Assembly (NCBI RefSeq): GCF_016432865.1
Contig: NC_067400.1
Coordinates: 619,876,001-619,940,000 of the forward strand
Direction: 5' to 3'
DNA: 64,000 nucleotides
Source of the DNA: Antechinus flavipes
Lineage: Eukaryota
Below, one piece after another: positions 25,349-51,121 of this stretch. A program made the position numbers and the translations under genes. How positions within the stretch are numbered: the first letter of the stretch is position 1; the number at the start of each line of letters is the position of its first letter. Below the pieces are notes generated by a model. The model did not search any database. It was not told the origin of the DNA and was given only the letters and a program-made list of their open reading frames with translations.

Positions 25349-28300
25349 ATGTACAGCTTCATGGGCGGGGGCCTCTTCTGTGCCTGGGTGGGGAACATCC
25401 TGCTCGTGGTTGCCACGGCTACGGACCATTGGATGCAGTACCGGCTGTCCGGGGCCTTTGCCCACCAGGGCTTGTGGCGCTATTGCCTCAGCAACAAATG
25501 TTACCTGCAGACCGAGAGCATTGGTAAGGGGGCTGGTGGGGGGGGGGACCAGGGCCACAGGCCAGAGCCCCGGGCACTTGGCTGTAACCGGGCAGAGCAG
25601 CCCGGGCGGGCACCGAAGTGGGGGAACAGGTAGAGAATCCAGGGGCATCTGGAGGTTGGCAGAGCCAGAGAGTCTTAAGGAAGCCCAGAGCGAGGAGGAA
25701 TATCCTTAAAATGGAGAATGGCGGGGATGGCAGGACCCTTAAAGCAGGGAATGCAGGGATGGCAGGACCCTTAAAGCAGGGAATGACGGAGCTGGGAGGG
25801 GCCAGAGAACAGGGAAAGTTCGAAGTGAGAAGTTAAGAGATGATCAAGAAGGAGAAAGAGAAGCAGGAGGTGTGAAAGAAAAAAAGAGAAAGATGGAACA
25901 GTAACAACAAGGAAGAGACAGAGAGCGGCAGGAGCCAGGACACTGAGGCAGAGATGGGGAAACACATACGGGGAAACAGACGTGAGGAAGGCAGGATGGG
26001 GAGACAGAGGGAGGGAGGAGGAGGAAAGAAACCAAGATGTGGAGAAAAACAGGGAAATCAACAGAGATAGAAAAGAAACAGAGACAATACACACAGAGAG
26101 ACACAGTGAGACAGATACACAGAGACAGAGAGACAACCAGACAGAGACATCGACAGAGAAAGATACAGAGAAAGAGGAAACGGAGAAAGAGCGAGACACA
26201 GAGACATGAACAAAGATACCTGAGAGACAGAGGGAAAGATCCACAGAGACAGAGACAAACACAGACAGAGACAAAAACAGACAGAAACAAGGAGCTAAAA
26301 GACACAAAGAGAGGCAGAGAGGAAGGAGACAGAGACATAAAGAGACAGAAGGGGGAGAGAAGGAAATAGCAGGTGGTAAGGGGAGGAAGGAAAGGAAAAG
26401 AGGAAAGGGACACAGAGGAAAAGACAAATAGAGATGGAGATGGGCCAGGACAGGGAAAACTCTAAGGAAACTGAGATGGGGACGGAGAGAAAGAGGAAAA
26501 TGAACAGAGACAGAAACAGAGAAGGTGAAATAGCTCACAGGAGAGGAGAGCAATCGAGACCAGGTCAAGGTCTGGGAGATGAAGCCCGCGCGCTGCCCAA
26601 CACAAGGGGTACAATGGCAGGCAAGAATCAGCCCCTGTGCTTGAACTCAGGAGATCTCCTGCGGGAGACCCCGTGCCAACAATCAGGGGCACCAAGAGGC
26701 AACCTGGAGGGATGCCCTAGGGAAGGCAGTAGCATCAAGAGAGATGGGGACCCTGGGAAGTGGTCATGAGTGGGGAAAAGGATGGGCTGGGCAGCCTGGA
26801 AGTAACCTCAGAACCCAGATCTTTCCTGCCCCAAGAAGCCAGGGACTGCGGTACATCCCAGAGGGAGAAGAGCTAGCCTCCGTTCTCCTCTCTGCTTTCA
26901 GCTTCAGTCGCCTCCCCGGGCCGCAGTTGCCCTGTTTGCTAAATTAGGGATTTTCTCTAAAATCGTGATCCCAAAGGCCCCTCCCTGCTACTTCACCCAT
27001 CAAGATGTAGCTTCTCCCTATGGAGAACATGCCCAACTTCATGGGGTCCAAAGGGGTGGTTACATTTGGTGATCAGAGGAGGCTCCCTGTGTTAGGAGAA
27101 TCACATGAGCTAGTGGAAAAGGGCTGCATAAATGTCTCTTTTATTACCACTTGTCTATTAGTTATTTTTATTAATTACATTATTATATTTATTACCACTT
27201 ATTACTTATCACCAAGTAGTTCTTAACACAGTTTCTGTGAATGAGACGGTGGGTACATTTGTTGCTTCTTTCATGACATCGCCTTTCGTATTTGAACAAG
27301 TCTGAGACAAAGGGGAGGAAGAATAGTGAGACTCAGAACCAAGAACTGAGTTCCAATCCTGCTTCAGACTCTTGTACAGCCATCACTTTTCTTGGTCGCA
27401 ACCTCAAGTTTGTTCATCTGTTAGGTGACTTGTGGGAGCATCAGCCCTAATACATTGTGGTGTCCAAGCTTTAAGTGCTACATAAACATCATTATTATTA
27501 CCACTTTGCAAAAGAAATAGAGGTGCCGGGAAGGGAGGGGACTTCTCAGAACTGGGAGAGAGTTGGGGCTCTCTCTTTCAAGCAGTGCATAAAAAAATTA
27601 ATCTTCCCTTAGAACATTCTCAATCAGGGATGTCTAGCTTCTTCTGAATTATCTCAGAGCATCAGGGGACCCACTACTCCTAAAGTAATCTCCCCCTAGA
27701 ACATACCTAATAAGGGGTTCTCTAATTTTTGAATACCCGCAGGGGTCAGGGGACTCACTACTCCCAAAAGAGCCCATTTTCCCCTGACCTCAAACCTAAA
27801 TCTCCTCTCTATGCTTTTTGCCCATGACTGTTGCCTTCTGGTATCAATTAGAGCAAATGTGGCTCTTCAGAGACTTGAAGGTAGCCTAGTATGGCTGCCC
27901 TGAACCTTCTCTTCTTTGGATTAAATGTTCTTAGTCCCTTTAACTGCTCTTCATATACCATGAACTGAAATTTCTCTACCACCCTAGTTGACCTCCTCTT
28001 GGTCAGCTTGTTGATGAGCTTTCCCTGGGGTACCCAGAATCAAACACAGTGCACCGAGGGGTTCTTACTAGGGTATGGTATAGCTCCCTAGTTCTGGACA
28101 TGAACTTGCTAAACCTAAGCAAGCCCTGAATTGCTTTTCCAACTGCTGAATCCTCTTGTTGATGCATTCTAAGCATGCAGTCCACTAAAACCCCAAACAA
28201 AATAAAAATAAAAAGCAACCAACAATCTGGATTCTTCTCAAAAATGTTGCTCAGTAAAACCTCTTTTATCTTCCACTGGTGAAGTTAATTTCTTGAATCC

Positions 28301-30642
28301 AAATATAAAACTTTAAATATTCACTCATTCATTTCTCCAGATGATATTCAGCCCCATTGGTCTAGTGGCTCTCTATATGACTATCTTCCATTGGTGAAGT
28401 TGATTTCTTGAACCCAAGTGTAAAAGTTTACATTTATCATTCATTCATTTCTTGAACCCAAGTGTAAAAGTTTACATTTATCATTCATTTCTCCTGATGA
28501 AATTCAGCCCCGTTGGTCTAGTTGGTCAATATCTTCTGTCTTCCACTGGTGAAGTTGATTTCTTGAATCCAAGTATAAAACTTCACACTTAACCTTCATT
28601 TCTCCTGATGAAATTCAGCCCCATTGGTCTCGTGGCCCACTATATGACTATCTTCCACTGGTAAAGTTGATTTCTTGAACCCAAGTGTAAAATTTACACT
28701 TATCCCTCATTCATTTCTTCTCATGAAATTCTCGGAGACTGTGTCAGGGAATCAGAACAAATCTAAGCAGTCCTGCCAAGCTGGGAAAGCCTTCCGCCCA
28801 AGTCCAACTAACCTTGCAGAGCCTTGAATAGGCTTGTCACCAGAAGGTTGGCCAGAAGGGGAAGAGAACACTGTGGTTCTGGAGGATTGGGGAGGGTTTT
28901 CCCATAGGCTGTGTCTATCCTGAGTCTGGGAGGAAGAGGAGGATTCTACAGAGCAGAGACAAGGAGAGAGGGCTTGACCTATGGGTTTGCAAAGAACCAG
29001 AGGAGGTAAGGCTGAAGTTGAGAAAGCTCTCCTCTCCCAATCGAACTAGAAATGTGGGAGGGAAATTGGGGGGAAAAGGCAGAAAAGGCCAGCCCTCCGA
29101 GCTGGCTCCATAGAGAAGCAATTGGATCTGGAGCTACAGACTGGATCATGTAACCTCTTGTAAAACTTGGGGCTCTTAAAAGAACACAGAATCTGGAGTC
29201 GGAGGTCTTGGGATTGAGTTCCAGGTCTGCCATTTAATGACATGACAACCTCTCTGGGCTTCAGTTTCTCATCTGTAAAATAAGCCTCTGAGGTCCATTC
29301 CTAGGTCCTGCTGCCGTTGAGAAAATCAGGTCAATGGAGAGCTCTTTGTGAGCCTTCGGGCTATAACTTTTTATTCTCCTTATTAAAGCCTGGGCTGCTA
29401 GTCTGTGCTTTAGCCTCTAGGTGATAGGGAGCCACCAGAGGATTATGAGCAGGGGAGGGAAGATCAGGATTCCTTTGACAAATGTTACCGGTAACCATGG
29501 AAAGAGGCAGTTGCCGGAGACTGGAGGAACGCAGGCAGATGGCTGATGACAGAGTGAGCTGAGATTTGTATTGGAGGGGGGAATGGAAGGTGGGGAGTTC
29601 ATGTAAGGAAGGAGAAAGGGTATGAGGGCTAAGAAAGGCCATTAATGGGCGAAGTCAATGGCTGAAGAGCTCCGTGGTACGTTGGGGAGGGGGGAATAGA
29701 GCAAGACCAAAGGTGGGGGTAGGTTGTGGAAGTGGGGAAGCAGGGTGTCTGGACCCCGCGCCCCAGCAATACTCCAGCACGCGATGGCCGACACGTGAGA
29801 ACGAAGAAGTGAGCAGCTGTTGCCCCTTCAATAGCATATTGGAACGCGACGCGGGCCTTCATGATCCTGGCGGCTCTCTGCTGCTTTGTGGGGATTGTCA
29901 TCGGGATCCTGGCCTTTGCCCAGCTGCCCACCTTCCACCGGCTCACGCGCCCCTTCTCGGCGGGCATTATGTTCTTTATCTCCAGTAAGTGACCCCCCTC
30001 TTTCCTCTTTGCCGACCTTCGCCCTCCCCAGCTCTGTCCGGACCCTTCCCAAGGACAGCCATGACCGCTCCCGGCCCTCAGTCCTGGCTCGAGCCCATCC
30101 CCAGCTCTCGCCCCAGTCCGTCCCTGACTCTAGAACCAGAAATCCTACTTTTAGTCCTAAATCTAGCACCATCTCCTCCCCCCCAGTCCCATGGCCATTC
30201 CCATTTTCAGTCACCTCACCACCCCTCCTCCCACGCTTCTCTCCGAGGGGGGGGTCAGGGTGCCCCCAGCCCCATCCCCTCCCCCGCCGCACCCCCAGAT
30301 CCATCCCGGCCCCCTCCCCCCAGTTTCTAGCCTTCCCCGCCCTGTCTCTGTCCAGCTCTCTTCGTCCTCCTCGCCATGGCCATCTACACGGGAGTCACCG
30401 TCAGCTTCCTGGGCCGCCGCTTCGGGGACTGGCGCTTCTCCTGGTCCTACATTCTGGGTTGGGTGTCTTTGCTCATGACCTTCTTTGCAGGTAACTATAG
30501 ACCCGGTGAGAGGCCGGGGCTTGGGGCTGAGAGGGCCTGGACCCTTGGCCTGGGTCCCCTCAGACCTTCCCTCCTTGTAGGGATATTTTACATGTGCGCC
30601 TACCGAATGCATGAATGTCGCCGCCTTTCCGGACCCCGCTGA
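25349..30642 (+). CDS. LIM2: Lens intrinsic membrane protein 2 (MP19/MP20), 173 aa; exons 25349-25523, 29835-29984, 30356-30490, 30581-30642
   Basis: MYSFMGGGLFCAWVGNILLVVATATDHWMQYRLSGAFAHQGLWRYC...AYWNATRAFMIL...RRFGDWRFSWSYILGW...IFYMCAYRMHECRRLSGPR. All introns are GT-AG phase 1, total 522 nt. AATAAA at 30973-30978. Confidence 0.98.
27820..28730 (-). mobile_element. CR1/L3-like fragment followed by ~115-bp degenerate tandem duplications (28255-28730) in LIM2 intron
   Basis: The unit cttccactggtgaagttgatttcttgaacccaagtgtaaaa...cattcatttctcc recurs about four times. The upstream sequence resembles CR1 3' regions (from recall). Confidence 0.55.
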
Positions 30643-31237
30643 GCCCGGGCGCCGTCCAGGGGGCCCTGGAGCCGTCCTGTCCCCGACCCCGGCCCCGGCC
30701 CCCTCCCCTTGGATCCGACTTCAGTGAAGGAGCAGCAGGAAGCCCGGTCCCCGAGGGGCTGGGCTCGGGCGGTCTGGCTGCTTGAGGCTCTGAGGGAGTA
30801 GAGCTGGGCTGGCCTGCATCTGGGGGAGGGGAGAGTGGGCTCGGACATCTGGGCCCCCGGGGGCAGCCGCGGGAGCCGCATCTCTGGGCCCCTGAAGAAT
30901 CTGGGGACAGGACTCTGAATGTCTGGGGGCTAGCCTGGGGGGGGGAGGATGGAAAGGCTTGTTCTGACCTCCAATAAAACTACTGCGAAGCCCACTCGTG
31001 GTCTCTGAGTCAACATTTGTCCAGCGGTTGTTGGGCCCCCCAGGGACGGCTCAGGAACCCCGGATGCGCGACCGGCCAGACGTGGGGCTCGTGGCCTGGG
31101 GATCGAGGCCTCTGTGCCTCTGGCGGGGCCGGGGGGATGAAGGACTGACCGTCCAGGCCCCTCGAAGGGGGGGGGGGCTGGGGAAAAGCGTTCCGTGGCA
31201 GTTGAAGGAGTCTCCCAGGAGCTGTGGAATCATGATC

Positions 31238-34200
31238 ATGGCTAAACTGGCCAAGCTGCGTTGCAACTTCATCTCCACCATCCCGGCATTGCTTTTCATC
31301 AAAAGTATCACCATCCTGGGCGTCATCTTCTTTAACCCCTCCTGGGCTTTCTTCTATAACTATGAATACGAGGCCTTGGTGATGGCCAACCCATGGGTCA
31401 TATGCGTGAGGAAGCAGTGTAAGGTCATCAAGCACATCGGTAAGGCCCCGACCCCGCCTCGCCTCCCGCGCTGCGCTCTGGGCTTCCTTCTCCCCCCAGT
31501 CCCAACCTGTGACCTCGGGGGTATGACCCCTCTCCTCCCCTCTCCCCCGTGTGTCAGCCATCTCTGGGCCCGGACTCTTTAACTAGTGACGGATGTGGTC
31601 CAGCTTTCAACATCGCCCCTGGGATGGGTGACTGGGAACCTGCAGCACCAGGCGGCGTGGGATGAGTGCTAGTCCCTGCCCTTCCAAACGGCGCTTCCCC
31701 TTTCCTACCTGACACTAGTGGCTGGACGCCTGATCAATAACTCCTCGCTCCTGCTTCCTAACCTCTGACCCCCTTCCCTTCCAGCATCCCCGAACCTGAT
31801 CCCTCGGTCGGGCCCCCCTCATCAACTCCCACCATCCCCTTTGGTTTTACTCAGTAAGATTAACCTTTATCTCTTCCCTAACCCTAGTTGATCCTCATCA
31901 ACTCTGGGCAAAGAACAGACCAGGATTTAACCTTTTGGCAACCTGGCTTGTGTGTAAAAGGTAGAGAGACTTGGAGGACAATTCAATTCAATTCCACAGA
32001 CATTTATGGAGGGCTTGTGGTCTACAGGGCCTTACGCTCAGCGCTAGGGAAGCAAACAAAATGAAACCAAAAAACCATCTCGTGACAAATGGTCAAACAG
32101 CACGTCTACAGCCGATGCTCCCATTTTGACCGAGTTGGTTTAACTCTGCCCAATCATTCTAGAGTTCTCAGCGTGCATTTAGTAAACATTTACTATGTGT
32201 CAGGGATTTCTGGGAATATAAAGAAAGGGGAAAAATCCAGCCCCTGTCCTTAGGATTTCACCACCCGTAGCCAACCTAGGGGTGAGATCCTCAGAACTTA
32301 GTAAGAGATCATTAGATGAATCATCATGATGATTATTCTTGTTATGTTGACAATATTGATATAATTAAGAGGTATTCATTATATTTCTATTATTCTAGTG
32401 AATTAGCATTGATGAGTAATCATATAATTAATACTTAACTAGTTGTTTTATTGATATATTAATTATATTGGTATGTTTGTACTTGATATAATTAACGTAT
32501 TATGTCAATAATAGCTCACATTGATGTAGTGTTTTAAGGTATCCAAAGTGCTTTCCACATATGATCTCGTTCATTCTCAAAACATGAGATCTGGGGGATC
32601 GAGAGGTTATTTTTATTCCCATTTTACAGATGAGAAATGTCTGAGGCAAGTTTCCAATTCAGTTCTTCCTAACTCCAAGACTTTCCACTCTAACCACCAA
32701 TTGAGAGCTTTTATTTTTTCACTTGAGTCTTTTGAGGAACCCTGGGTTATCTCCTTGCCATGACTAGGTTGAAATCTAAATGAGGGAAGCAAACATTGAT
32801 TAAGCACCTACTATGTGCCAGGCACTATGCTTAGTGCTTTCCGAGTATTATCTCATTTGATTTTCACAACAACTTTGAAGGGAATTGTCATTATTATCCC
32901 CCATTTTATAGTTGGGAAAACTTAAGGCTGAAAGAGGTTAAGTGACTTGTCAGCACAAAGTCACACAGCTTTCAGTGGTTCATATATCCATATTGGTTAT
33001 GTTTGTGAGAGAAAACACAGATCGAAAAACATAAAACATAAAAAACTAAAGCGAAAAATAGTTTGCTTTGTTCTGCACACACAAGTTCTTATTCTGGATG
33101 TGTATAGCATTTTTCACTATGAATATGTTTTGGCTCATTGTTTTGCTGAGAAAAGCTAAGTCAATTATAGTTAGTCATCACACAGAGTTACTGTTACTAT
33201 GTACAATGTTCTCTTAGTTTTGCTTAATTCACTTTGTATGAGTTCATCTAAGTTTTCCTAGGTTTTTCTGAAATCATCTCATTCACCATTTCTTATAGCA
33301 GAATAATATTCCATTACAAACATACATCAAAACTTGTTCAGCCATTACCCAAATTACAATTCTTTGTTACCACAAAAAGAGCTTCTATACATTTTTTGTA
33401 TAAATTGGTTCTTTTCCCTTTAAAAAATATGTTTGGGGAATATGAATAAACATTTTGCAAAGAAGAAATTAAAGCCATTTCTTGTCATGTGAAAAAGTAT
33501 TCTAAATCACTTTTGATTAGAGAAATGCAAATTAAAACAACTCTGATCTATCACTTCACACCTTTCAAATTGGCTAAAGAAAAGGTCATGATAAAAGTTG
33601 GAGGGGATGTCAGAAAATTGAGACACTAATGCATTGTTGGTGGAATTGTGAAAGGATACAATCATTCTGAAGAGCAATTTGGAGCTCTCCAAAGGGCTTT
33701 AAAACTCAAAGGTCTATAAAACTGGGCATACCCTTTGACCCAGCAGTGTCATTACTGGGTCTGTATCCCAAGGAAATCATAAAAGAGGGATGTGCAAGGA
33801 TGAATGTTGAAAATTATCTTTGAATGTATTTGGAAAAACAAAATAATATTTATTTTATTTTTACAAAATAATATTTAAAAATATCTTTCACATATAGAAT
33901 TTATATTGCTATTTCTGGTCAAAGGACATGCACAATTTTATAGTCCTTTGCTCCTAGTTCCAAATTGCTCTTCAGAATAGTTGGATCAGTTCACAATTCT
34001 ACCAATGGAGTATTAGTGTTCCAATTTTCCTACATGCCCTCCAATATTTGTCAGTTTGTTTTTCTGTCACATCAGTCAACCTGATAGATGTGAGGTACTT
34101 GGAGTTGTTTTAACATATATTTTTCTAATCATCATTGATTTGGATTTCTTCCTCTGAAAACTGCCTGTTTGTATCATTTGACCACATATCATTTGAGGAA

Positions 34201-36119
34201 TGACTTATTTTCTTATATATTTGATTCTGTTCCATTAAATATTTGAGCAACGAGGCCTATATCAGAGACATTTGCTATAAATTCCCCCTCACCTCCGGCT
34301 TTCAGCTTTTCTTCTAATTTTGGCTGTACTGATTTTGTTTGTGCAAACCCTTTAAATTTAATATTAAAATTATTCATTTTACATCTCATAATTCTATCTC
34401 TTGTTTAGTAATAAGTTCTTTCCTTGTCCATAGATCTGATAAACTATTCCATGCTCCCCTGATTTTCCTATGATCTCACTCTTTCTATCTAAGCCCTGTA
34501 CCAATTTTGACCTTATCTTGGGACACGGTGTAACATGTTAGTCTATACCTAGTTTCTGTCAAATTATTTAACAATTTTCCCTGAATTTTATCGAATAGAG
34601 AATTCTTGTCCCCAAAGCTTGGATCTTTCTGTTTTTCAAATACTACATTATTGTGATCATTGACTACTGTGTATTCTATACCTGATCTATGCCACTGATT
34701 CACCACTCTATGATTATTAGTATGGATAGGACATCTTCTTTCACATTTCCCCCCATTAATTTTCTTGATATTCTTCACCTTTTGTTCTTCCAGATGAATT
34801 TTATTATGTAGTTCAATTGGCATGGCACTGTATACATAATTTAATTTGAGTAAAATTGTTATTTTTATTATACTGGCTCAACCCATCCATAAGCTATTTT
34901 TTTCTGATTGTTTAGATCTGATTTTATCTGTGTGAAAAGTACTCTGTAATTGTGTTTTTATAGTCCCTGGATTTATCTTAGCATGTAGATATCCAAGTAT
35001 TTTATATTGTCTACTGTTAAGGGACAGATCAGTTCTCCAAGAGCCTCCACAGCTGTGGATCATAGCATCTGAAGGAGTCACAGGGCAGCCTTTGCTGACA
35101 CAGGTGTTGCAGATTGGGAATGAGATAAATTGGAGGCAGAGGGAAGAGGAGAGAGGTCAGCCATTGTCAGGTGGCTTCCGTGTATTCCAACAGTTCTTCC
35201 GTGTATTCGAACAGTCTACCTCTATTTAAAATGGAATTTCTCTTTGTATTTCTTGCTGATGGACTCTGTTGTCAATATGAAGACATGCTGATGTTCATTT
35301 ATGTGAGTTTTCTTTATATCCTGAAACTTGGCAAAGTTGTTAATTATTTCAACTAGTTTTTTAGTTGATTATTAAGTTTACCATCATATCATTTGCAAAG
35401 AGTCATAGTTTTGTTTGTTCACTGCCTATTTTAATTCCTTCATTTATAGTAACAATACATTTATAGTAACAATATTGAATAATTGTGGGAATAATGGGTA
35501 TCCTTACTTCAATCCTGCTCTTATTGAGAAGTCTTTCTAGCTTATCCCCATTACAGGTAATACTTGCTGGTTTTAGATATATGTTACTTTAAAGAAGATC
35601 CATTAGTTCATATGATCTCTAGGGTTTTTTTTTAATAGCAATGGGAGTTATATTTTGTCTAAAACTTTTGCATCTCTTGAGATGATCACATAATTGCTAT
35701 TGGTTTTGTTATTGATATAGTCACCTATGCTGATAGTTTTTCTAATATTGAATCAGCCCCGAATTCCTGGCATAAATCCTATCAGGTCATAATGTATGAT
35801 TCTTGTGATATTTTGCTGTAATTCCTTGGCTACCAATTTATTTAAAAATTTTTTTGCAGCAATCTTCATTAGGGAAATTGGTCTATAGTTTTCTTTCTCT
35901 GTTTTGGCTCTTTGGGGCTTAAGTATTTTTAGTTCCATGTTTGTATTTTTAAAATAATTTGATAGGCGCCTTCTTTGCCTATTTTTATTTTTTTCCAAAG
36001 ATTCTCTTTTTGGTTACATTTTAAGTTCTGAACTACCTGTTTCCTTTCCCACTTCATACTAGAGAAAGCTACCATTTGGCACGCACATTATATATAAATA
36101 TAAAAAGATAGCTAGAGGG

Positions 36120-36173
<54 letters not shown>

Positions 36174-39100: not shown

Positions 39101-42100
39101 GCACATATAACTTGGTCTACTCTTTTTACATTTTATTGATGTAATCATTTAGAGATATGTTTTCCTCTGATTAGTGCTTTTGTTGCATTCCATTGGTTTT
39201 GCTATTTTGTCTCATTTTCCTTATTGTTTCTATGACTTGTTCATTTTTTTAATTGAAGCTTTCTCTTTTCAAAACAGATGCAAGGATAATTTTTAATCAT
39301 CAACCCTTTCAAAACCTTGTGTTCTAATTCCCCCTCCCCTTCCACCCTCTCCTCTAGATGGCAAATAACCCAATATATGTTAAACATGGTAAAACTATAT
39401 GTAAATTAGGGCACCTAGATAGTGAAGTAGATAGAGGACCAGCCTTGAAATCTCCTAACTTGAGTTCAAGTCTGCCTTGACTTGAACTTGACCTTGAAGT
39501 TAAGTGTCGCTTAACACTTCCTAGCTATGTGACTCTGGTAAGTAACTTAACCCCAATTGCCTCAGGGGAGAAAAAAAAATATATATGTAAATCTAATATA
39601 GGCAAATATTTATACAATTATCTTCCTGCACAAGAAAAATCAGATTAAAAAAATGAGAAAAAAATTCACCAACCCTTTATCCAGTTGATAAATGGTCAAA
39701 GGATATGAATTTTGAGATGAAGAAATTAAAAATATTTCTAATCATATGAGAAGGTGTTCCAAATCACTATTGATCAGAGAAATGCAAATTAAGACAACTC
39801 TGAGATACCACTACACACCTCTCAGATTGGCTAAGATGATGAATGTTGGAGGGGATGCGGGAAAACGGGGACACTGATGCATTGTTGGTGGAGTTGTGAA
39901 GTGATCCAACCATTGTGGAGAGCGATTTAGAATTATGCCCAAAAAGTTATCAAACTTTGATCCAGCAGTGTTAATACTGGGCTTATACCCCAAAGAGATA
40001 CTAAAGAAGGGAAAGGGACCTGTATGTGCCAAAATGTTTGTGGTGGCCCTGTTTGTAGTGGCTAGAAACTGAAAACTGAGTGGATGCTCATTCAGGTAGA
40101 GAATGGCTGGATAAATTGTGGTATATGAATATTATGGAATTTTATTGTTCTGTAAGAAATGACCAGCAGGATGATTTCAGAGAGGTCTGGAGAGACTTAC
40201 ATGAACTGATGCTGAGGGAAATGAGCAGAACCAGGAGATCATTGTACATGGCAACAGTTAAGATTACATGATGATCAATTCTAATGAATGTGGCTCTTTC
40301 CAACAATGAGATGATTGATGCCAGTTCCAATGGTCTTTGTGATGGAGAGAGCCATGTGTGCCCAGAGAGAGGACTTTGGGAACTGAATGTGGATCCCAAC
40401 ATAGCATTCACACTCTTTTTGTTGTTCACGTGCATTTTGTTTTCTTACTCATTGACTTTGTATGACCTGATTTCTCTTGTGCAGCAAGAGAATTGTATAA
40501 ATATGCTTATTATATTGCATTTAACGTATATTTCAACATGTTTAATATATATTAAATTACTTGCCATCTAAGGAAGGGGGGGGGAGGAGGAGGAAATGTG
40601 AAACACAAGGCTATGCAAGGGTCAATGTTGTCAAATTATCCATGCATATATTTTGAAAATAAAAAAAGCTTTATATATAAAACAAAAAGACTCAAGCAAA
40701 CAACAACAAAAGAAGTGCAAATGCCAGTTGAGCCATACTCGGTCCTCACAGTCCTCTCTCTGGGTGTAGATCACAAAGTCTTTGGAACTGGCCTGAATAA
40801 TCTCATTGTTGAGAAGGGCCAGGTATGATTTCTTCTTTAATCCACTCATTCTTTCAGATTAGTTCAGTCCCCCATTAATTTCAATGTATTTTCACGATTT
40901 CTTATTTTATTGCATCATCTGGAACGGACGCATTTACTATTTGATTAACATTTTATTGATGTAAGGATTTAGAGATATACGTTTTCCTGTGATTACTGCT
41001 TTTGTTACATTCCAGGTTTTGTCTGATTCTTTTTTTTTTTTTTTTAAATCATTTTAATGATTGTTTTTACAAGTTGTTCTTTAGCCCCTTCATTCTTTCA
41101 GATGAGCTAAGTTAGTCCCCATTCACTTTCCGATTAGTTTAGTCCCCAATTAATTTGAATGTTTCCATGGTTTCTTCTTATTTTATTGCATTATGATCCG
41201 GAAAGGCTGCGGGGAATATTTCTGCTTTTCTGCACTTAATGATAAGGTTTTGAACGTCCTAATAGACGGCCAATTTTTGTAAAGCTCCCATACGTGTTCC
41301 TTGCTCCATTCAGTTTTCTCCAGAGATCTAGCATTCTAACTTTTCCACAATTCTCTTCACCTCCTTATTTTGTTGAAGGCTGTCTGGCTCTGAGAGGAGA
41401 AAGTTGAGGTCTCTCACTAGCAGAGTTTTACTTTTCCCCCCGGGGAACTCATTTTACTTTTAAAACAGCAATTCTTCTTTCTGGACTCTCTCCTCCTGCC
41501 TCCGAACTTTCCCCTCCTTTTCATGCCGTTTTCACCTCCAAAAGCGCAGCCTCCAATGCGGCCCCTGGCCCACCCCTGCTCCCTTTCGTCTCGGGTCCCC
41601 CCCCTTCTCCCTCCTCCCGGGCCCCGGCCCCCCCTCCTGAGGCTCTCTCCGCCTGCCGCCTTCCCCTCCCGTCCAGGACAAGCCGAAGCCTGTCGCGTGT
41701 GTCTGGTGGTATCCCTGGTCCTGTCTATGCCTCTGGGCATAAGCGTGCTGGCCCACATCTTGGGACTGCTGTCCAGCTCGCTGCCAGAGACCATGCCCTT
41801 CTTCACGAGCATCCTTTGTCTGGCAAACGGTGCGTCCCGGGCCCGGGGAGACGGGCTCCGGGAGTCCTGGGGGATGTGGGCGGAGCCGCGGCCCCCTCCC
41901 TTTCCTCGCCCCCCTTCTCTGCCAGGTTGCTTGCAGCCCGGCACCTCCACACCCAAGCCCCTCCCGAGCCCGTGTCACCCACCCCGCTACCCCTCCCGAG
42001 CCCGTGCCACCCACCCCGCTGCCCCTCCCGAGCCCGTGCCACCCACCCCGCTGCCCCCCCCCGAGCCCGTGTCACCCACCGCGTTGCCCCCCCCAGCCCG

Positions 42101-44070
42101 TGCCACCCACCGCGCTGCCCCCCCCCGAGCCCGTGTCACCCACCCCGCTGCCCCCCCCGTCCTGACTTCCCACCCCGCTGCCCCTCCCGAGCCCGTGTCA
42201 CCCACCCCGCTGCCCCCCCAGCCTGTGCCACCCACCCCGCTGCCCCTCCCGAGCCCGTGTCACCCACCCCGCTGCCCCCCCAGCCCGTGCCACCCACCCC
42301 GCTGCCCCCCCCCGAGCCCGTGCCACCCACCCCGCTGCCCCTCCCGAGCCCCTACCACCCACCCCGCTGCCCCTCCCGAGCCCCTACCACCCACCCCGCT
42401 GCCCCCCCGGTCCTGACTTCCCACCCCGCCGCTCCGCAGGTTTGGTCAAGTTTCTCGCCTTCATATTCTTCCACCTCCTGTTGACTCAGCTCAAGTTCCT
42501 CCTTCGGCTGTTCGATATGTGGCTCAGCTGGCCCTCCTACTTGCTCCTGACGTCCTCGGTGATCTACATCGTGGTCGGTGCGGCCGGGGAGCGAGCGCCG
42601 GAGCCGGGGAAGAAGGGGAGGGACGCGGATGGGTCAGGAGAAGAGGGGAAGGGGAATGGAGGAGGAGAAGCGGCCGAGGGAGGAGGAAAAAGGGAAGGCG
42701 AGCTTGTTGAGGCAGAGAAAAGGAAGATTTCCAATGGCAGGAGACCCCTGTGGAGGAGGGGACCACGGAGAAAAGGGGAGGCTGGCAAAGGGAGTGGAGA
42801 AGGTAAAGGGGATGAATGAGGAGGAATGAAAGGGAAGGCCATGAAGTGGGAGAAGCTGTAGAAAGATGGAAGAATGAGAGGTGTGAAGCCTTTGACTCAG
42901 GCTGCTGTTGGGAGGTAGGGAAGACTACCTACATGGGATATAAAGGGAGAAAGGAGGCAGCTGGGGGGCCCAGTGGATAGAGCACCTGCCCTGAAATCAG
43001 GAGGATCTGAGTTCAAATCGGGCCTCAGACACTGAACTCTTCCTAGCTGGGTGACCCTGGACAAGTCACTTAACCCCAACTGCCTCAGCAAATAAATAAA
43101 GGGAGGGAGGAGGGAGCTGTCAGAGAAAGAATAAGCAGGAGGAAGTAGCGAAGGAGGGTAGAAGGGATAGTGTAAACCATGCAGAGGCAGCTAAGGGGCA
43201 ACTGAAGTGAAAGGGTCCTGAGTTCAGATTTCACCCATCACTTTTAAACAGGTTGGGGAAGCCATTCAACTTGTTTCCTTGTCTGTAAAATGGGGATAAC
43301 AGCACTCCCTCCCAGCGTTCTGAGGATCAAATAAGATATTTGTAAACTGCTTTACAAACCTTTTAGTACTATGTAAATGCCATTATATAGGGCAGAAGGC
43401 AGCAAAAAAAAAAAAAAAAAAGGGGGGGGGACAGCGTATTGAGGCAACGGTTTTGAGAGTATAGACTGGGGTGGAAGAAGCAGGCAGGTAATATTGGTGG
43501 AGAGGAAGAGAGATGGACAGGGAATATAATGACCACAATGAATGCAAGTAGATCTTGGGGTGGAGCACCGAGGCCAGGGCAAGAAAATAAAGGAAACGAG
43601 TTGCCTTCTTCTCCTGGGGAGTACAACTGGGACCTCTCTTTTCCCTAGGGTCCATCATCTTCCATTATCACCTTCATCTCCTCACTTCCCAGAAAAAGCC
43701 TTTAGAGAAGCTGGTGATTTCCGAAAACACAATCGTCACGAAGAGTTTGAAAAATTTCTTAGCCTCCAGAATGACTGAAAAATCTGTCGGCACAAAGACC
43801 AAAACCACCCTCACCAGAGGTCTTGATGTCTTCTTGCACCCAAAGTTCAAAAGAACTCGACCTTCAAGTCTCAGGAAGTCCCACTTCTTTAAAAGAGTTT
43901 CTATTGCCAAGCTGTCTAACAGATCCTGGAGCTCTGAGCAGCCTTGGGTCTCCCAAAACCTTAAAACCTCTTCATATCCCATGGGCTTTAAGGTTCAGCC
44001 AATCATTATGAATCCCCTTCCCTCTGTGATTTCCGATGTTCCAAGTACTTCAAGTCACACAAAACTCTAA
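31238..44070 (+). CDS. Unnamed PMP22/EMP/claudin-family tetraspan gene A, 304 aa (306 from ATG 31232); exons 31238-31439, 41677-41829, 42440-42577, 43649-44070
   Basis: All three introns are GT-AG phase 1 and the frame is open throughout (915 nt). There are four hydrophobic segments, an ECL1 W...NPWxxCxxxxC motif, WLSWPSY before TM4, and a long basic tail. Candidate ATTAAA at 44392-44397. Joining exon 1 to exon 2 across 10.2 kb is inference. Confidence 0.8.
33000..38200 (-). mobile_element. Mosaic of LINE-1 fragments (mostly minus strand; a plus-strand piece at ~33480-33830) in gene A intron 1
   Basis: ORF 35753..35998 reads [20 protein letters not shown]...[12 protein letters not shown], matching L1 ORF2. 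Other T-rich antisense L1 segments are present. Confidence 0.75.
36120..36168. repeat. (TG)n microsatellite
   Basis: Directly visible. Confidence 0.95.
39408..39565 (+). mobile_element. WSINE1-like SINE
   Basis: gggcacctagatagtgaagtagatagagga...gagttcaa...gtgactctggtaagtaacttaaccccaattgcctc. Confidence 0.75.
39660..40690 (+). mobile_element. LINE-1 3' portion (ORF2 C-terminus, 3' UTR, A-tail)
   Basis: [19 protein letters not shown]...[16 protein letters not shown] and [20 protein letters not shown]; terminal aaataaaaaaagc. Confidence 0.9.
41955..42430. repeat. CpG-rich ~32-bp minisatellite (ccgagcccgtgtcacccaccccgctgcccctc) filling most of gene A intron 2
   Basis: Directly visible tandem copies. 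It explains the Pro-rich ORFs at 41523-42484. Confidence 0.95.
42953..43090 (+). mobile_element. WSINE1-like SINE
   Basis: ggcagctgggggcccagtggatagagcacctgccctgaaatcaggagg...gagttcaaatc...accccaactgcctc. Confidence 0.85.
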
Positions 44071-45096
44071 AGTCTTGCTCCCAAGAGCTCAGACACTTCT
44101 CCTCGTTGCTCTCTCCCCACGGTCACAATTCTCCTCCTGGAGGAGTCCTCCGCGGATCCTGATGCTGCTGGAGGTGTCTAACCTTTGTCCTTTCCCTCAT
44201 AACTCCCCTCTCAAGCTCGAGCCAAGATTTGCCCTCTGTGAGATCCATCTCTGGCCCTGTTGAGGACCTGGTGTAGACAGGAGCCTGGATATGTATGGAC
44301 TGTGGGGAAGCCAGATGGAGCAGAAAATGAAGATGTGTGAAGACAGAAGGATAAAAAAGAGATGAATGTCTATTTCCTACATTGTGTTGTCATTAAAGAA
44401 AGCCTGAGACTTCCTCCCGAACCAGTGTTCCACCATCTCCGTTATGTTTCCTGACTCCATCTCTAACTCCGCTCCCCACCTGTATCCCTCCTCCATCACA
44501 TCCCTATCTTTAAGCCCAGTCCCAGTTTGATCATTAACTCCAACCTGATGTCCACCCCCACTCTCTCCTCTAACCCATATTCTTATCTTTCCCCTCATGT
44601 CTAACTCCCATTCCACTATCCTCCCCAAGCCATAGCCAACTCACCACACCCCCAAATTCATGCCTATTTCCTACTGTTAGCTCCATTTCTAACTCCGAGC
44701 CCCACATAACCCCCCATCCTCTGCGGTACACTGGGGTGGGGGTGGTGATGTCAGCCTTGGGTATCTTGGAAGGTTCTGTGACAGTTGAGGCCCTGGAGGG
44801 AGTGGGGAAGGTCAGAAAAGCCTGGAAGGGGGAGCACAACTGTTGTACCTGAGGAGAAATCTGAGGGGACAAGGAGGGACCTGAAGGGATAAGAAGAGAT
44901 CAAGACTTGGGAAGGAGCTAAAGAGATGGGAGATAACTATGGCAGAAATAAAAGAAACTGAAGACAAATATTAGGGCCTGGATAAAGAGAGGAAGCAAAA
45001 CCGGATAAGGGCAGACCGATGGATAGTCCGGGCTCCCGGTCCTGGGCTGGGTTTTGCCTGCCTTGTACCCAGGAGCCTCTCAGCCTTTAGTGGAAA

Positions 45097-46372
45097 ATGA
45101 AGAAAAAGGGTTCATTAAACCAAAAAGACGAATTGGTGCCCTTCAAAATGGCCCTGAACATCCTTTGCCTTATACTTCTCCTCCTCACCGTGTTCTTGCC
45201 CTACTGGCTGAAGATACAAAAGTCTCAACAAGAGTGTATCCACGTGGGCATATGGAAATCCTGTGGGAATCACATATGTGAGAACCTTGTGAAGTCAGGT
45301 ACATGGGGACAGGGAGAAGAATGGAGGGCAGGAAGTGGGGATGAGGATTTCGAAGGAGGTAGGGAAGAGGGATGGGGTCAAGAATAAAGAGAGAATAAAG
45401 ATGGGGCTGAAGGTTGGACCAAGATGGAGGGTAGAGACTGAAGGTGGAGATGGGAATAAAGACAGAGAAGGGGAGTCAAAAGGACCCTTGGGCTTACAGG
45501 ATGTGTGTTCCGTTAGTCTGAGAAAGTTTCTTTCTGTGGGTGAGCAAATAGACACAGGAAGCTGATTGTGGGGACTTAAGGGGTGTGTGTGTGTGAATGT
45601 GAGTGTCTAAGAGTGTGTGTGTGTGTGCAAGAGTGTGTGTGAGCGTGTGAGTGTATGGCCATTGCCATCACTCCCTCTCTCCAGTCTTAATTAAGGCAGT
45701 TCAAGTGCTGATGGGCTCAGCCATTGTAACTGGCATCTTGGCTCTTGTGAACATTTTCCTGCTGCTGATCAATGTAGTGAATGATAGGACCTCCTTCTTC
45801 CTTTCCTCTGCCCTGTGCAGCTTTGTCACTGGTAAGATTCGGGGCCTCAGGGTCTTGGTCACGAGGTGCTGGGAGGCCGATCGCGTGCTGGTTCTGGGGC
45901 GGTGACCGCATCCGATTCTCCCCGCAGCCTTACTGGGCCTTTTTGGTCAAAGCATCTTCATGGTGACCACCAGCACTTCAGCGTTGGGACGCGTTGATTT
46001 CCTTTATTTTGACTGGGCCTTCTACCTAGGCTGGGGCACTTACATCCTCTACCTCCTGAATGGTGAGCCGGTGATAGGGGCTGAAAAGGGCTGGGGACGA
46101 GGAACGGGATTGGGAAGGAAGCGGAGGATGGGAGTGGGCAGAAGATGGAGAGAGGATTGGAAAGGGCCACAAGGGTGAGTTTGGAGACGGGTGTGGGAAT
46201 GGGGCTGGGCTGGGCGTGGAGGGGGTCTGGAGATGGGGATGAGAATGGAAACTTAGAGGCCTTCTTTCTCAAAGGGTCCCTGATACTGGTGAGGAAGCAC
46301 TCCACCAGGGTGAAGCCAGCAAAGCAATCTAGAGTCATGTCGATACAAGAGTGCAAGTCGGTGGCCGTGTGA
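45097..46372 (+). CDS. Unnamed PMP22/EMP/claudin-family tetraspan gene B, 193 aa; exons 45097-45298, 45685-45831, 45928-46062, 46275-46372
   Basis: All introns are GT-AG phase 1 with a clean 582-nt ORF. The claudin-like ECL1 reads W...GIWKSCGNHIC, and FDWAFYLGW precedes TM4. AATAAA at 46671-46676. Confidence 0.9.
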
Positions 46373-46413
46373 AGACAGCCCAGCTCCCTTGTCCTGGGAT
46401 GGACCTCCTGCAG

Positions 46414-46414
<1 letters not shown>

Positions 46415-46467
<53 letters not shown>
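46415..46467. repeat. (TG)n microsatellite in gene B 3' UTR
   Basis: Directly visible between the stop (46372) and AATAAA (46671). Confidence 0.95.
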
Positions 46468-46470
<3 letters not shown>

Positions 46471-47565
46471 GCCTCTGGGGCTCTTGAGTTTGTCTCCATT
46501 CTAACAATATTTTGCCTCCAGGACCCCTTCTTCCTCATTGCCATTCTTCCCAAGAACCCGCTGGCCTGTTTCTGTGCATGGTGGGAAGGGAAGAAGGAAA
46601 AGAAGTGGCCTGAAACAGTCTCCAAGCCCCACTGGGGATCTGGTTTTCCAGCTAAGAAATCATTTATATAAATAAAACCAGTGAATAGCCATGTCCACGG
46701 ACAGTCTAACCAGTTGTGTCTTTGGGAAACAAAATGAACCTTTCATGGTTATCCTGGATGTTTCAGCTCAGGTCAGGTCCCAAAGCTTCCCAATCCCCTT
46801 GGGGTCAAGGTGTCTATCCCACAATGCCTTTGGCCCCCAGATCCTAGCCCCCCATTGTCGTGGGCTTCTCTGTGCCAAACCCTTTTGGGGACCCCAAGTG
46901 TCTGCCTCCAACCTCCCTTCACTTAAGGGACCTCGGCATCTAGTCAGCCCATCCCCTCCCCAGGACAGAAAGGAAAGGGGTCCGTGAGTCAGTTCTGCCG
47001 AGCCTCTGCTGTTACCAGCCACATCCCCTCCTACCCACATCCTGGCCAAAAGGCCATTGTTTGAAAGCTGCTCGTGCTTCCTTCGGGGAGCCTCCTTGCC
47101 TTTCAGGGAACAGGAGGGAGAGGCCTCTCCCCTCAACTCCTGACCTTCAGTACCTGGAGGGATGGGCCATACCTACCTGCCTTTTGCCTCACCCCGCCCC
47201 CACCAGCCCCAGACAGAGTGAAGTTTGGGGGAAGGAGCATAAAGATGATCTGAGTCATCAATCTGGTGTGAAAGCCCCCACCGCTTCCCCTTCCGGGGCC
47301 CAGGCTTGGATCCCCCAACCTCCTGCTGGCTTGGCCAGGTCTCAGTCCCCTCCTCGCCTCCTGAAACCCAAGCATTTGGTCTCCGATCCTCCGACTTCTC
47401 GGGTCCCAGCTCCCGGCCCCCCGACCTCCCAGGAATTCGGGCCGTCATCCCAAATCTTTATTGTCCGAAGTCCCTTTTCTTCTCTGACTTTGGCTGCCTG
47501 AGGCCCCGGGCCCCTGCCCCCTTGTGAGAATAAGGCGCCTCCGGTTCCTGAGGACCAGGTGAAGG

Positions 47566-48451
47566 ATGCGGCTCTGCGGGGTGCTCGCCCTGCTCTCCGG
47601 GAGTCTTGCTCTGGCCCTGCTGCTGGTCGCCCTGAGCACTGATAACTGGATCGCTTCCGTAGGCCGTAATCACCAGGCTCACTCCGGCCTGTGGCATCCC
47701 GACGGGGAGTCTGTGAAAGGTAAGAGGGGCGGCAGCCTCTGGGCCTTGGGCCTGGCTGCCTGGGAACACGGGCTGAGATGCTCCAACCCCCGTTGCAGAT
47801 TTCATCCTGGCCACCAGAGTCTTCACTATCCTGGCTGCACTGGGGGGTCTGCTGTCCATCTGCTGTCTGATCCTCCTCCTCACTCCATCCCTCTGCAACC
47901 CCAGCTTCAGCCACCTGGCCTCTCTGATTTTTTGCATCACAGCCTTTGCTGCAGGTGAGGTGGCAGGGGGGGGGAGAGGGAGAAGAGGGGGAGGGGAGAA
48001 CTGGCAGGTTGGGATGGGAGGAAAGGGCCTCACAGCTCCCATCCACAGTCCTCTGCAGCACAGTGGGAATGGCGATTTACACTGGAGAGCGATGTAAAGA
48101 GTCGGGTTATTCCCAGATTCAGACGACCTTTGCCTGGTCCTTCTACATGGGATGGATTTCTGTCGTCTTCTTCCTTTTCACTGGTGAGTGGGAGACGTGA
48201 GATATGGGGAATGGGTGGAGGACCGGAGGCCTCCCATCCCAGGAAGAGGGGGAGACTGGGCAGAGCGGCCTCTGAAGGGAAGCCTCGGATCGGGAGGATG
48301 GGGGAAGGGTGCACGAGGCGGCATGGGGGGGCCGCTGGGGAGATCGGCATGGGGAACTTCCTCTGAAACCCGCCTCTCTGCCACAACAGGGGTCCTGAGC
48401 CTTGTGGTGCACTGGAGTGCTCCCCGGCCCAACTACGAGATAACTGCTTGA
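47566..48451 (+). CDS. NKG7: Natural killer cell granule protein 7, 168 aa; exons 47566-47719, 47799-47954, 48049-48183, 48390-48451
   Basis: MRLCGVLALLSGSL...ALSTDNW...AHSGLW, QIQTTFAWSFYMGW and PRPNYE match human NKG7. Introns are phase 1 GT-AG. AATAAA at 48474-48479. Confidence 0.95.
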
Positions 48452-49489: not shown

Positions 49490-51121
49490 ATGGGGGTGAA
49501 GCGAAGCCTGCAGAGCGCCGGCCTGTGCCTGGGCATCTTGGCCAACGTCCTGGTCGTGCTGGCCACCTCCACCGACTTCTGGAGCCGCTTCTCCGATGGC
49601 CACAACGGGCTGTGGAGACTCTGTCGAAGAAGGAACTGTACCAACTCCCCCTGCGAGAGTGAGGGCCACTCCGCCCCGCCCCTCCCCCAGGGGCCCAGAA
49701 CTGGGGGTCCCCCGACCTGCCGGCCCAGGGCCCGGTTTCCTGAACCGTTACCACGCAGGCTGGTCTCCCACGTCCCTTCCAACAGCAAATAGTTGCTTCA
49801 GTTGCTCCACATCCTCACCACCAGGTCCCCGCCTGTTACGGCGGAGGCTGGGGACGGGCCCGGCTATCACGCGGCCTCCTTTCCTCCTCGTAGCCTCTTA
49901 GGCACAAAGCGGGACCGAGGGCCCCTCTGGGGTGGGGCGGGGCCCAGGAGGGGTTTCTGCGGCCACCTCCACTCTCTCCTCTTTCCCCCAGCCATGCTGG
50001 CGGCCACGGCGGCCTGTGTGGTGTTGGCCGCTGGCGCGGGCCTCTTGGCCTCCATGCTGGGCGTTCGAGTCCTGCTCGCATCCAGGACCGGGAACCTTAT
50101 CCCCCCGCGGGGTCGGAACGCCTGCCTGGTGTTCTTCCTGAGCGGTGAGAGGCTCCCAGCCGACAGGGGGCGGGGCCGGGCCCAGAGGGCTGGGGAGGCC
50201 TAGGGAGGGGGGCTCAGGCCGGGGAGGCTAACTCCAGCCTCCCTTTTGAGAAGGCGCGAAGGGAAAGGGAGGCTCAGGTTAGATGAAGGCCCACCCGGGC
50301 TGACAAAGCCGGAGGCCGGCCGGGCCAGGAGCGCATCCTCAGAATGATGGATTAGGAGAGAACGGAGCTCGCTCTGCTAAAATGGGAGGCCGCGGGAGAG
50401 GGACCGACCCAGCCCGGGCCTAGGGAGGGGGCGGAGCCAGACCAAGAACATAAGAGAGGGGGCGGAGCCAGACCAAGCAAAGTAGGGGGGCCAGGGGACG
50501 GGCGGGGGCCGCAGCCGTCTGGAGCAGTCGCGGGGTGCCTCGGCCCCCCAGCTCCGCTCACGCAAGGGTCGGGGTGGGGGCAGCGCTGCTGCTGCTGGCA
50601 GGCATGGTGGGCTACACTGCGCGGGACGCGTGGAAGGCGGACAGCTTCTTCTCCTGGTCCTACTTCACCGCCTGGCTGGCCCTGCCCTTCTCCATCCTCG
50701 CAGGTAGCGAGGTCCAGGTGGAGACACGCCCTTCCACCCGCCTCAGGGACGCCCACTTTCCTCTCTTAGATTCACCAAGGCCCCTCCTCTCCCCTCCCCT
50801 CCCCCCCACTTCGGCTGCCAGGGACTCCCAGTCCTACTCTCCAGTCACTTAGATCGCTCCTCCAAAGACACGCAGTGCTAGAACTCCGACCCTGCATGGG
50901 ATTCCCCAGGATCCCTCCCTCCGAGTCACCCTCCCCAGCTGCCCACCTAGACCCGAGATCCTCAGCCCTCCCAGCCCCCTCCCCGGGACCCCCACCCTCA
51001 GGACCCTCCGTCGCCTTCCCACTGAGTGACCTATCCCCCTCCCCTAGGCTTCTGCTTCCTCTTCGCGGACATGATCCTGCAGAGCACAGACGCCATCAGC
51101 GGTTTCCCTGTGTGCTTGTGA
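49490..51121 (+). CDS. CLDND2: Claudin domain-containing 2, 171 aa; exons 49490-49658, 49992-50144, 50584-50703, 51048-51121
   Basis: MGVKRSLQS...GHNGLWRLC, FFSWSYFTAWLALPFSILAG and FCFLFADMILQSTDAISGFPVCL match human. AATAAA at 51143-51148. Confidence 0.96.

Follow-up and report, generated by a model that had tools for sequence, protein, structure and literature searches.

Two unstudied claudin-like membrane protein genes in the LIM2-NKG7-CLDND2 cluster of Antechinus flavipes

Gene order and exon plan of the array

We analyzed a window of 64,000 nucleotides (nt) of the Antechinus flavipes genome, in which the genes C19orf84 - LIM2 - A - B - NKG7 - CLDND2 - ETFB follow one another, the five from LIM2 to CLDND2 on one strand. 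The subject of this report is the pair A and B, two genes for small proteins with four transmembrane (TM) helices that lie between LIM2 and NKG7. The window agreed letter for letter with record CM028219.1 of assembly GCA_016432865.2 at every stretch compared. The models of LIM2, A, B, NKG7, and CLDND2 were all rebuilt from the window sequence. Each of the five genes has four coding exons and three introns. All 15 introns are GT-AG and of phase 1, and they fall at the same alignment columns, with the last intron splitting a glycine codon in every gene. A poly(A) signal lies 3' of each gene. An earlier note on this DNA, made from the sequence alone, had described five same-strand genes with four exons and three phase-1 introns, and the rebuilt models confirmed this together with every exon length that it quoted. 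The same five models could be built at the locus of the devil (Sarcophilus), with the same or nearly the same exon lengths. The features are listed below by their positions in the window, with protein lengths in amino acids (aa) and with ECL1 and ECL2 for the first and second extracellular loops.

LIM2 (MP20), 173 aa: 25349-25523, 29835-29984, 30356-30490, and 30581-30642, plus strand; rebuilt model with exons of 175/150/135/62 nt
Gene A exon 1: 31232-31439, plus strand; TM1 and the ECL1 motif W...NPW..C....C; 208 nt from the first ATG (31232, as in RefSeq) or 202 nt from the second (31238)
Gene A intron 1: 31440-41676, plus strand; 10.2 kb, AT-rich
Gene A exon 2: 41677-41829, plus strand; 153 nt, TM2 and the intracellular loop
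Minisatellite in gene A intron 2: 41957-42409, no strand assigned; GC-rich, 32-nt unit, about 14 copies (Tandem Repeats Finder)
Gene A exon 3: 42440-42577, plus strand; 138 nt, TM3, ECL2, and TM4
Gene A exon 4: 43649-44070, plus strand; 422 nt, cytoplasmic tail of about 134 aa, then stop
Gene B exon 1: 45097-45298, plus strand; 202 nt, N terminus, TM1, and ECL1 with W...GIW..C....C; 81% identical to the devil exon
Gene B exon 2: 45685-45831, plus strand; 147 nt, TM2, loop, and start of TM3
Gene B exon 3: 45928-46062, plus strand; 135 nt, TM3, ECL2, and TM4 with FDWAFYLGW
Gene B exon 4: 46275-46372, plus strand; 98 nt, short basic C-terminal tail, stop
NKG7, 168 aa: 47566-47719, 47799-47954, 48049-48183, and 48390-48451, plus strand; exons of 154/156/135/62 nt; NCBI calls a 168-aa gene
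CLDND2, 171 aa: 49490-49658, 49992-50144, 50584-50703, and 51048-51121, plus strand; rebuilt model with exons of 169/153/120/74 nt, also called by NCBI (171 aa)

In GCA_016432865.2 the genes called here are C19orf84, LIM2 (173 aa), A (183 aa), NKG7 (168 aa), CLDND2 (171 aa), and ETFB. The call at the LIM2 position is a 173-aa PF00822 gene, and an AATAAA at 30973 lies 3' of it. ETFB begins at about 51870, after CLDND2. In the phylogenetic tree, NKG7 of the window clustered with NKG7 of devil, armadillo, and tamandua (support 100/98).

The earlier note had also attributed two sequence motifs to all five proteins, and both hold in part. The ECL1 signature W...[GN][LIP]W..C was found in four of them, but in NKG7 the GLW is not followed by the cysteine. 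The W.[SF]Y-type motif before TM4 is present in its strict form in A, B, and NKG7, and LIM2 and CLDND2 have SWSY instead. ECL1 reads W..GIWKSC....C in B, and A carries the variant W..NPWVIC....C. In an alignment of 25 sequences, the positions of devil W30 and W47 were invariant and that of C50 was nearly so.

The arrangement is shared with other Australian marsupials. In the devil the order is LIM2, A (298 aa), B (192 aa), NKG7, CLDND2, ETFB. The tammar wallaby has the same order, with products of 300 aa for A and 194 aa for B, and both genes are present in the koala. In the sugar glider (Petaurus breviceps papuanus) the gene model named "protein NKG7" (P0009, 268 aa) fuses exon 3 of A, exons 2-3 of B, and exons 2-4 of NKG7. 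This chimeric model indicates that A, B, and NKG7 are neighbors in the sugar glider too.

Structure and annotation of gene A

Exon 1 of gene A begins 259 nt past the AATAAA of LIM2, ends at a GT donor at 31440, and is a 100% match to the RefSeq entry LOC127556434 of A. flavipes (P0001). Exon 2 matches P0001 and also the gene A protein P0003. In the RefSeq model, exon 3 ends at a different GT donor, 4 nt farther upstream, which shifts the frame of the last exon and gives the 183-aa product; this donor reflects either alternative splicing or an annotation error. The rebuilt antechinus protein is about 304-306 aa long. Its tail is basic, with a net charge of +17, and rich in serine and threonine. 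The frame of the tail is open in antechinus and is conserved with isoform X1 (298 aa) of devil LOC100920296. Other database entries for gene A are a 247-aa isoform of the devil gene, koala LOC110219806, and the 300-aa wallaby product. Possible poly(A) signals lie at 44392 and 44947. Intron 3 was left out of all sequence comparisons. An RVxF motif for binding of PP1, as in TMEM225, was considered for the gene A tail and rejected, since none is present.

A proline-rich open reading frame (ORF) of 297 aa at 41523-42416 was rejected as a part of gene A: the minisatellite of intron 2 keeps the exon 2 frame open. This ORF could pass for coding sequence in the output of an ORF finder. Intron 1 contains a (GT)25 repeat at 36120-36169 and several ORFs with an L1-type motif, for example at 33489-33629 and 39746-39877, which we take to be L1 ORF2-like fragments.

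Structure and annotation of gene B

Gene B is intact from 45097 to 46372, yet it has no gene call in the annotation of GCA_016432865.2. Its product in antechinus is 193 aa long and 82% identical to devil B. The 147-nt length of exon 2 is common to antechinus B, tamandua B, and the lizard gene P0011, and the 135-nt length of exon 3 is conserved in devil, tamandua, and lizard. An alternative last exon at 46145-46242 was rejected because it is not conserved; the devil, koala, and wallaby proteins end like the exon at 46275-46372. In the presumed 3' untranslated region of gene B, a perfect (TG)27 repeat at 46415-46468 comes after the stop (46372) and before an AATAAA at 46671.

Elsewhere gene B is recorded under other names: "NKG7 isoform X2/X3" in the devil (the 192-aa gene), "NKG7-like" in the koala, and "uncharacterized" in the wallaby. 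The earlier view that two members of the array are apparently unknown therefore needs correction. Both exist as automatic RefSeq predictions, A as an uncharacterized LOC entry and B mislabeled as NKG7 or NKG7-like. The LOC identifiers of A and B and the name "NKG7-like" appear in no paper of the searched literature, and nothing on the evolution of the LIM2-NKG7-CLDND2 cluster was found there. A and B are unstudied claudin-like membrane proteins rather than unknown genes.

Family membership and predicted fold

Matches to Pfam were judged by the gathering cut-offs of 26.7 bits for PF00822 and 27 bits for PF25452. The gene B orthologues of koala (P0007, 37.2 bits), wallaby (P0008, 38.8 bits), and devil (P0005, 32.1 bits) scored above the cut-off of PF00822. 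Antechinus B was scanned exon by exon, and its exon 1 alone reached 19.3 bits; the scores of such single-exon scans were too low to assign A or B to a family. By the scores of its orthologues gene B is a true member of the PMP22/EMP/MP20 family. The gene A sequences P0001, P0003, and P0004 and the antechinus exons gave no PF00822 hit at E values up to 10. A sequence search of the PDB yielded a weak match of B to LIM2 and none for A.

The core of gene A (devil residues 1-185) was modeled by AlphaFold2 with a predicted local distance difference test score (pLDDT) of 89.4 and a predicted template modeling score (pTM) of 0.84, with the reservation that the alignment of 25 subgroup sequences behind the model contains further members of the family, whose presence may have favored the fold. 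The model consists of four helices (H), four strands (E) in ECL1, and one strand in ECL2, in the order H5-26, E31-35, E40-44, E48-51, E54-57, H62-89, H101-133, E138-141, H143-173. In a Foldseek search it matched claudin-19, -3, -4, and -15, TARPs, and MP20 at a probability of 1.0 and template modeling scores (TM-scores) of 0.65-0.78. Gene A is thus predicted to have the claudin fold. For gene B, the Atlas model of the koala protein compared with LIM2 at TM-scores of 0.77/0.85.

Age of gene B

An exhaustive profile search with the alignment of B gave 55 hits. Marsupial proteins ranked first, followed by the armadillo "protein NKG7-like" (E = 6.5e-25) and then by uncharacterized reptile proteins; a tamandua LOC protein, TMEM202, and the platypus "ODF4-like" protein were among the lower matches. 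In the armadillo the gene order is C19orf84, LIM2, B, NKG7, CLDND2, ETFB. The same order was found in Tamandua tetradactyla, where B again lies between LIM2 and NKG7. The tamandua gene (L006:10001-11226) supports an intact model with exons of 172/147/135/83 nt, canonical splice sites, introns all in phase 1, and a product of 178 aa. The position between LIM2 (or A) and NKG7 thus holds in devil, wallaby, armadillo, and tamandua.

Outside mammals, B was compared with two groups of uncharacterized sauropsid genes, R12 (for example Mauremys "TMEM47-like" P0012 and Caretta P0017) and the squamate group R11 (for example Hemicordylus "LIM2-like" P0011). In the loggerhead (Caretta caretta), R12, NKG7, and ETFB follow in that order on one strand, with R12 directly upstream of NKG7. 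In Mauremys R12 also adjoins NKG7, in the order R12 then NKG7. The lizard gene P0011 has exons of 172/147/135/98 nt, compared with 202/147/135/98 nt in B. In Hemicordylus capensis, three tandem copies of the R11-type gene stand on one strand (L003:600-18700), and P0011 is the annotated one. A gecko locus contributed little more. An uncalled first exon resembling those of LIM2 and CLDND2 was seen in Caretta between the NKG7-like gene and ETFB (L007:12734-12892). It is 42% identical to residues 1-51 of antechinus CLDND2 (E = 5e-5), and turtles may also carry a CLDND2-like gene at this place.

In the maximum-likelihood tree, marsupial and xenarthran B formed one clade (100/99), and a clade of LIM2, NKG7, and CLDND2 (95/87) excluded B. 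The tree did not order B, R12, R11 plus R15, and TMEM202 relative to one another. The best match of B in hhalign was R12. A forced grouping of B with R12 was not rejected by the approximately unbiased (AU) test (log-likelihood difference 0.08, p = 0.39). A forced grouping of B with NKG7 was rejected (p = 0.024, or p = 0.020 with turtle NKG7 included).

These results bear on the view implied by the database names, in which gene B is a duplicate of NKG7 that arose in the marsupial lineage. The names in the source records, the adjoining position of the two genes, and an identity of 28% between B and NKG7 speak for it. However, a syntenic B is present in two xenarthrans that also have an NKG7 of their own, B falls outside the LIM2/NKG7/CLDND2 clade with its pairing to NKG7 rejected in the AU test (p = 0.02), and hhalign matches B to R12, R15, and R11 better than to NKG7. 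We consider a marsupial duplication of NKG7 highly improbable. Gene B is rather an ancestral amniote gene that was kept by marsupials and xenarthrans, and the turtle gene directly upstream of NKG7 appears to be the orthologue of this therian gene.

The human locus presumably holds only LIM2, NKG7, and CLDND2. Among the 55 hits of the B profile there was no placental B besides those of armadillo and tamandua, although the clustering of the searched sequences at 50% identity could hide some, for example an afrotherian one. For cattle, a published gene table lists only LIM2, NKG7, CLDND2, and ETFB at the locus (PMC12071107). The earlier note had offered, as one possibility, that A and B are ancestral genes lost or relocated in eutherians. 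For B the ancestral origin stood, but the loss does not extend to all eutherians, as armadillo and tamandua keep a syntenic orthologue. The finding partly touches what the note had named as a refutation, namely that both genes would be well-annotated orthologues at this locus in eutherians: B is there in some of them. The proposal that the cluster arose by old tandem duplication is backed by trees and synteny.

Range and relatives of gene A

Gene A was seen only in dasyurids and diprotodonts, both Australian marsupials, with sequences from antechinus, devil, koala, wallaby, and sugar glider. No remnant of it was found in the 4.9-kb gap between LIM2 and B in tamandua. In the tree, its branch was 3.5 changes per site long. 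Gene A paired with the platypus TM225 protein P0062 at 97/95, a grouping in which both branches are long and which includes the one TM225 sequence of the set. P0062, annotated as "outer dense fiber protein 4-like" (L005:10001-14941), is a TM225-domain protein (73 bits) with exons of 214/147/132/263 nt, all of phase 1. The best Pfam hit of koala A was TM225 (PF25452), which was matched over nearly the whole profile at 18.6 bits (E = 0.002), below the 27-bit cut-off; devil and antechinus A gave no PF25452 hit. In the protein atlas, TMEM225B-like clusters came out on top for koala A, both by features and by structure.

Other comparisons pointed to other members of the family. With hhalign, the squamate R11 group was the best match of A (probability 88%), and a turtle locus has a gene of the R11 type on the other strand, upstream of R12. 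A grouping of A with R11 was not rejected (AU p = 0.14), and an exclusive clade of A and B was disfavored (AU p = 0.029). The family profile of A itself gave devil B the top score among non-A proteins. The ECL1 form x-P-W-x-x-C-x-[KR]-K-x-C is shared by A and platypus TM225. The shared "PW" was rejected as a marker of this pair because armadillo B also has GPW. The nearest relatives of gene A may be the TM225 (TMEM225B-like) proteins or the squamate R11 group, and both affinities are weak.

Gene A could instead have arisen within marsupials, by local duplication of B or a B-like neighbor with very fast divergence and the gain of a long tail, and would then be neither an ancient paralogue nor a relative of TM225. 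This would fit its restriction to dasyurids and diprotodonts, the lack of any trace in the tamandua LIM2-B gap, and the top score of devil B with the A profile. The very long branch would also allow the TM225 pairing to be long-branch attraction. However, the AU test disfavors an exclusive A+B clade, the tree joins A to a true TM225 protein (97/95), koala A finds TM225 as its best Pfam hit, Atlas features and structure rank a TMEM225B-like cluster first, and hhalign prefers R11, with an R11-type gene standing upstream of R12 in a turtle. We regard this origin as unlikely.

Selection and constraint

The ratio of nonsynonymous to synonymous substitution rates (dN/dS) was computed for antechinus versus devil only. 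For gene A it was 0.70 (bootstrap interval 0.42-1.15), with 0.5 in the core and about 1.0 in the tail, and for gene B it was 1.2 (bootstrap interval 0.61-2.8). The values for NKG7 and CLDND2 were 0.5 and 0.09. LIM2 differed between the two species by 13 synonymous and 0 nonsynonymous codon differences, and the protein was identical.

Insertions and deletions gave a different picture. The introns and the intergenic DNA around B differ by about 14 indel events per kb between antechinus and devil. In the 579 nt of B exons one in-frame indel was found, with about 8 expected by chance, and the 895 nt of A exons showed no net indel, with about 12 expected. The amino acid changes in B affected 8 of the 97 helix positions versus 26 of the 95 positions elsewhere (Fisher p = 0.0006). 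Over the longer distance from marsupials to xenarthrans, TM3 and TM4 of B show plain conservation. Armadillo and tamandua were 69% identical in B and 55% in NKG7, and antechinus and sugar glider were 68% identical in the A segment, 63% in the B segment, and 74% in NKG7. In both A and B, the helices are conserved and the loops and tails change fast.

The alternative to be weighed here is that A, B, or both are decaying or non-functional copies, incipient unitary pseudogenes whose frames are still open by chance. The dN/dS intervals of both genes include 1, and their exons diverge by 8.5-9.2%, no less than the 6.7-8.3% of the flanking noncoding DNA. The missing annotation of B and the truncated model of A in antechinus, as well as the change of GLW to GLR in tamandua B, would also agree with decay. 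Against this, antechinus and devil retain intact frames and every splice site, full-length proteins occur in koala, wallaby, and armadillo, and the tamandua model is intact. Indels are far below the chance expectation in both genes, the changes in B avoid the membrane helices, and TM3 and TM4 of B remain recognizable from marsupials to xenarthrans. The earlier note had held that a dN/dS near 1 together with a lack of transcripts would refute its reading. The values of 0.70 and 1.2 come partly within reach of this objection, but the deficit of indels and the conserved membrane helices argue for function despite them. Decay of A or B is, in our judgment, quite unlikely.

Origin of the array and possible roles of A and B

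The array is probably the remnant of a larger tandem series of tetraspan genes with the claudin fold, present already in early amniotes, with B as an ancestral member and A as a divergent member with a long tail. Gene A would be a very divergent member of the subgroup of B, in which the claudin fold is followed by the basic, Ser/Thr-rich cytoplasmic tail of 134 residues.

Several observations weigh against this reading. Between antechinus and devil, dN/dS of A and B is indistinguishable from 1, and in the antechinus annotation B is not called and A is truncated. Tamandua B has lost the tryptophan of its GLW motif, and its RefSeq entry LOC143658717 (285 aa) is mis-spliced and reads into intron 2. 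Armadillo B reached 12.4 bits on PF00822, below the cut-off. Gene A matches none of the Pfam families significantly, and the alignment behind its modeled fold was not made of gene A sequences only. The searches returned no A or B protein from opossums. The absence of B from boreoeutherians is deduced indirectly from the presumed human gene set, one cattle table, and a B profile search that gave no such hits.

The gene structures, orthologues, synteny, fold, and constraint pattern come from direct results, and the expression, tissue, and molecular partners of the two proteins are what we infer. A and B are expected to be membrane proteins of four helices with a small beta-sheet on the outer face, built from the two extracellular loops, as in their relatives of solved structure. 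Most likely they would, like LIM2, NKG7, and TMEM225, organize or tether a specialized membrane in one cell type. Conserved helices together with fast-changing outer loops and tails would suit an outer face that meets fast-evolving partners. For gene A, male germ cells are our tentative guess, made purely by analogy and with a little less than an even chance of being right. For gene B, germ cells or cytotoxic lymphocytes may be guessed.

A bolder proposal, which we hold to be doubtful, is that the LIM2-ETFB interval was the ancestral home of a whole clade of fast-evolving germ-cell or immune tetraspans (B/R12, R11, R15, TMEM202, and TM225/ODF4-like proteins). Gene A would then be the only mammalian survivor of the TMEM225/TMEM225B lineage at its original site, and B a functional amniote gene lost by boreoeutherians.

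On the main reading, the well-known placental locus with LIM2, NKG7, and CLDND2 has shrunk from an older array with more genes, and B was lost after xenarthrans had separated from the other placentals sampled. The analysis corrects database labels, as B is not NKG7, and B is missing and A truncated in the antechinus annotation. It also adds two proteins of the claudin fold, both unstudied, whose helices are conserved and whose outer loops change fast, a pattern of the kind seen in reproductive and immune proteins. Should B be a functional gene lost by boreoeutherians, marsupials and xenarthrans would be natural systems for finding the lost function, and should A truly be tied to TM225, it would give a first clue to the origin of those sperm tetraspans. 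The use of these results lies in comparative genomics and annotation, and they do not describe a new kind of system.

Comparison with known tetraspans

LIM2 is located in lens fiber junctions and NKG7 in cytotoxic granules. LIM2/MP20 (PDB 9cbv) and the PF00822 family share with A and B the four helices and the ECL1 signature W...G-x-W..C....C. LIM2 also shares the locus, the four coding exons, and the positions of the phase-1 introns. It is the nearest Atlas cluster to koala B, and the modeled structure of A aligns with MP20 at TM-scores of 0.68/0.75. In contrast, B is about 23% and A about 20% or less identical to LIM2. LIM2 is frozen in the antechinus-devil comparison, in which A and B evolve fast, and A fails PF00822 and carries the 134-residue tail.

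NKG7 resembles its neighbor B in the exon plan and in its fairly fast evolution (dN/dS 0.5). However, B keeps two ECL1 cysteines that NKG7 does not have, B lies outside the NKG7 clade, and xenarthrans and marsupials have both genes. Among the sauropsid genes, R12 is like B in its position directly upstream of NKG7 and ETFB, and P0011 of the R11 group in the lengths of exons 2-4, which equal those of B; R11 is also the best hhalign match of A. Both are 28-29% identical to B, are likewise unstudied, and are thus mute on function. TMEM202 was matched by the B profile at 48 bits and by hhalign at a probability of 94-96%, and it falls in the same tree subgroup, whose branching order the tree left open. 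It differs in its long branch, its length of 323 aa in opossums, and its weak PF00822 scores, and it was not found at the LIM2-NKG7 position in any locus fetched.

TMEM225 is a testis-specific four-TM protein that is needed for sperm maturation in mice (PMC10875271). The TM225 family (PF25452, with TMEM225, TMEM225B, and "ODF4-like" proteins) is like A in its plan of four exons with phase-1 introns and in its long cytoplasmic tail. It differs in that A scores below the PF25452 cut-off, the A tail is without the RVxF-type PP1 motif, and the platypus gene stands at another locus. Weak TM225 hits were also obtained with B, P0011 (R11), and P0012 (R12). The platypus gene for P0062 lies beside a SCAN-KRAB zinc-finger gene, away from the locus of LIM2, a setting that we take to resemble that of human TMEM225B.

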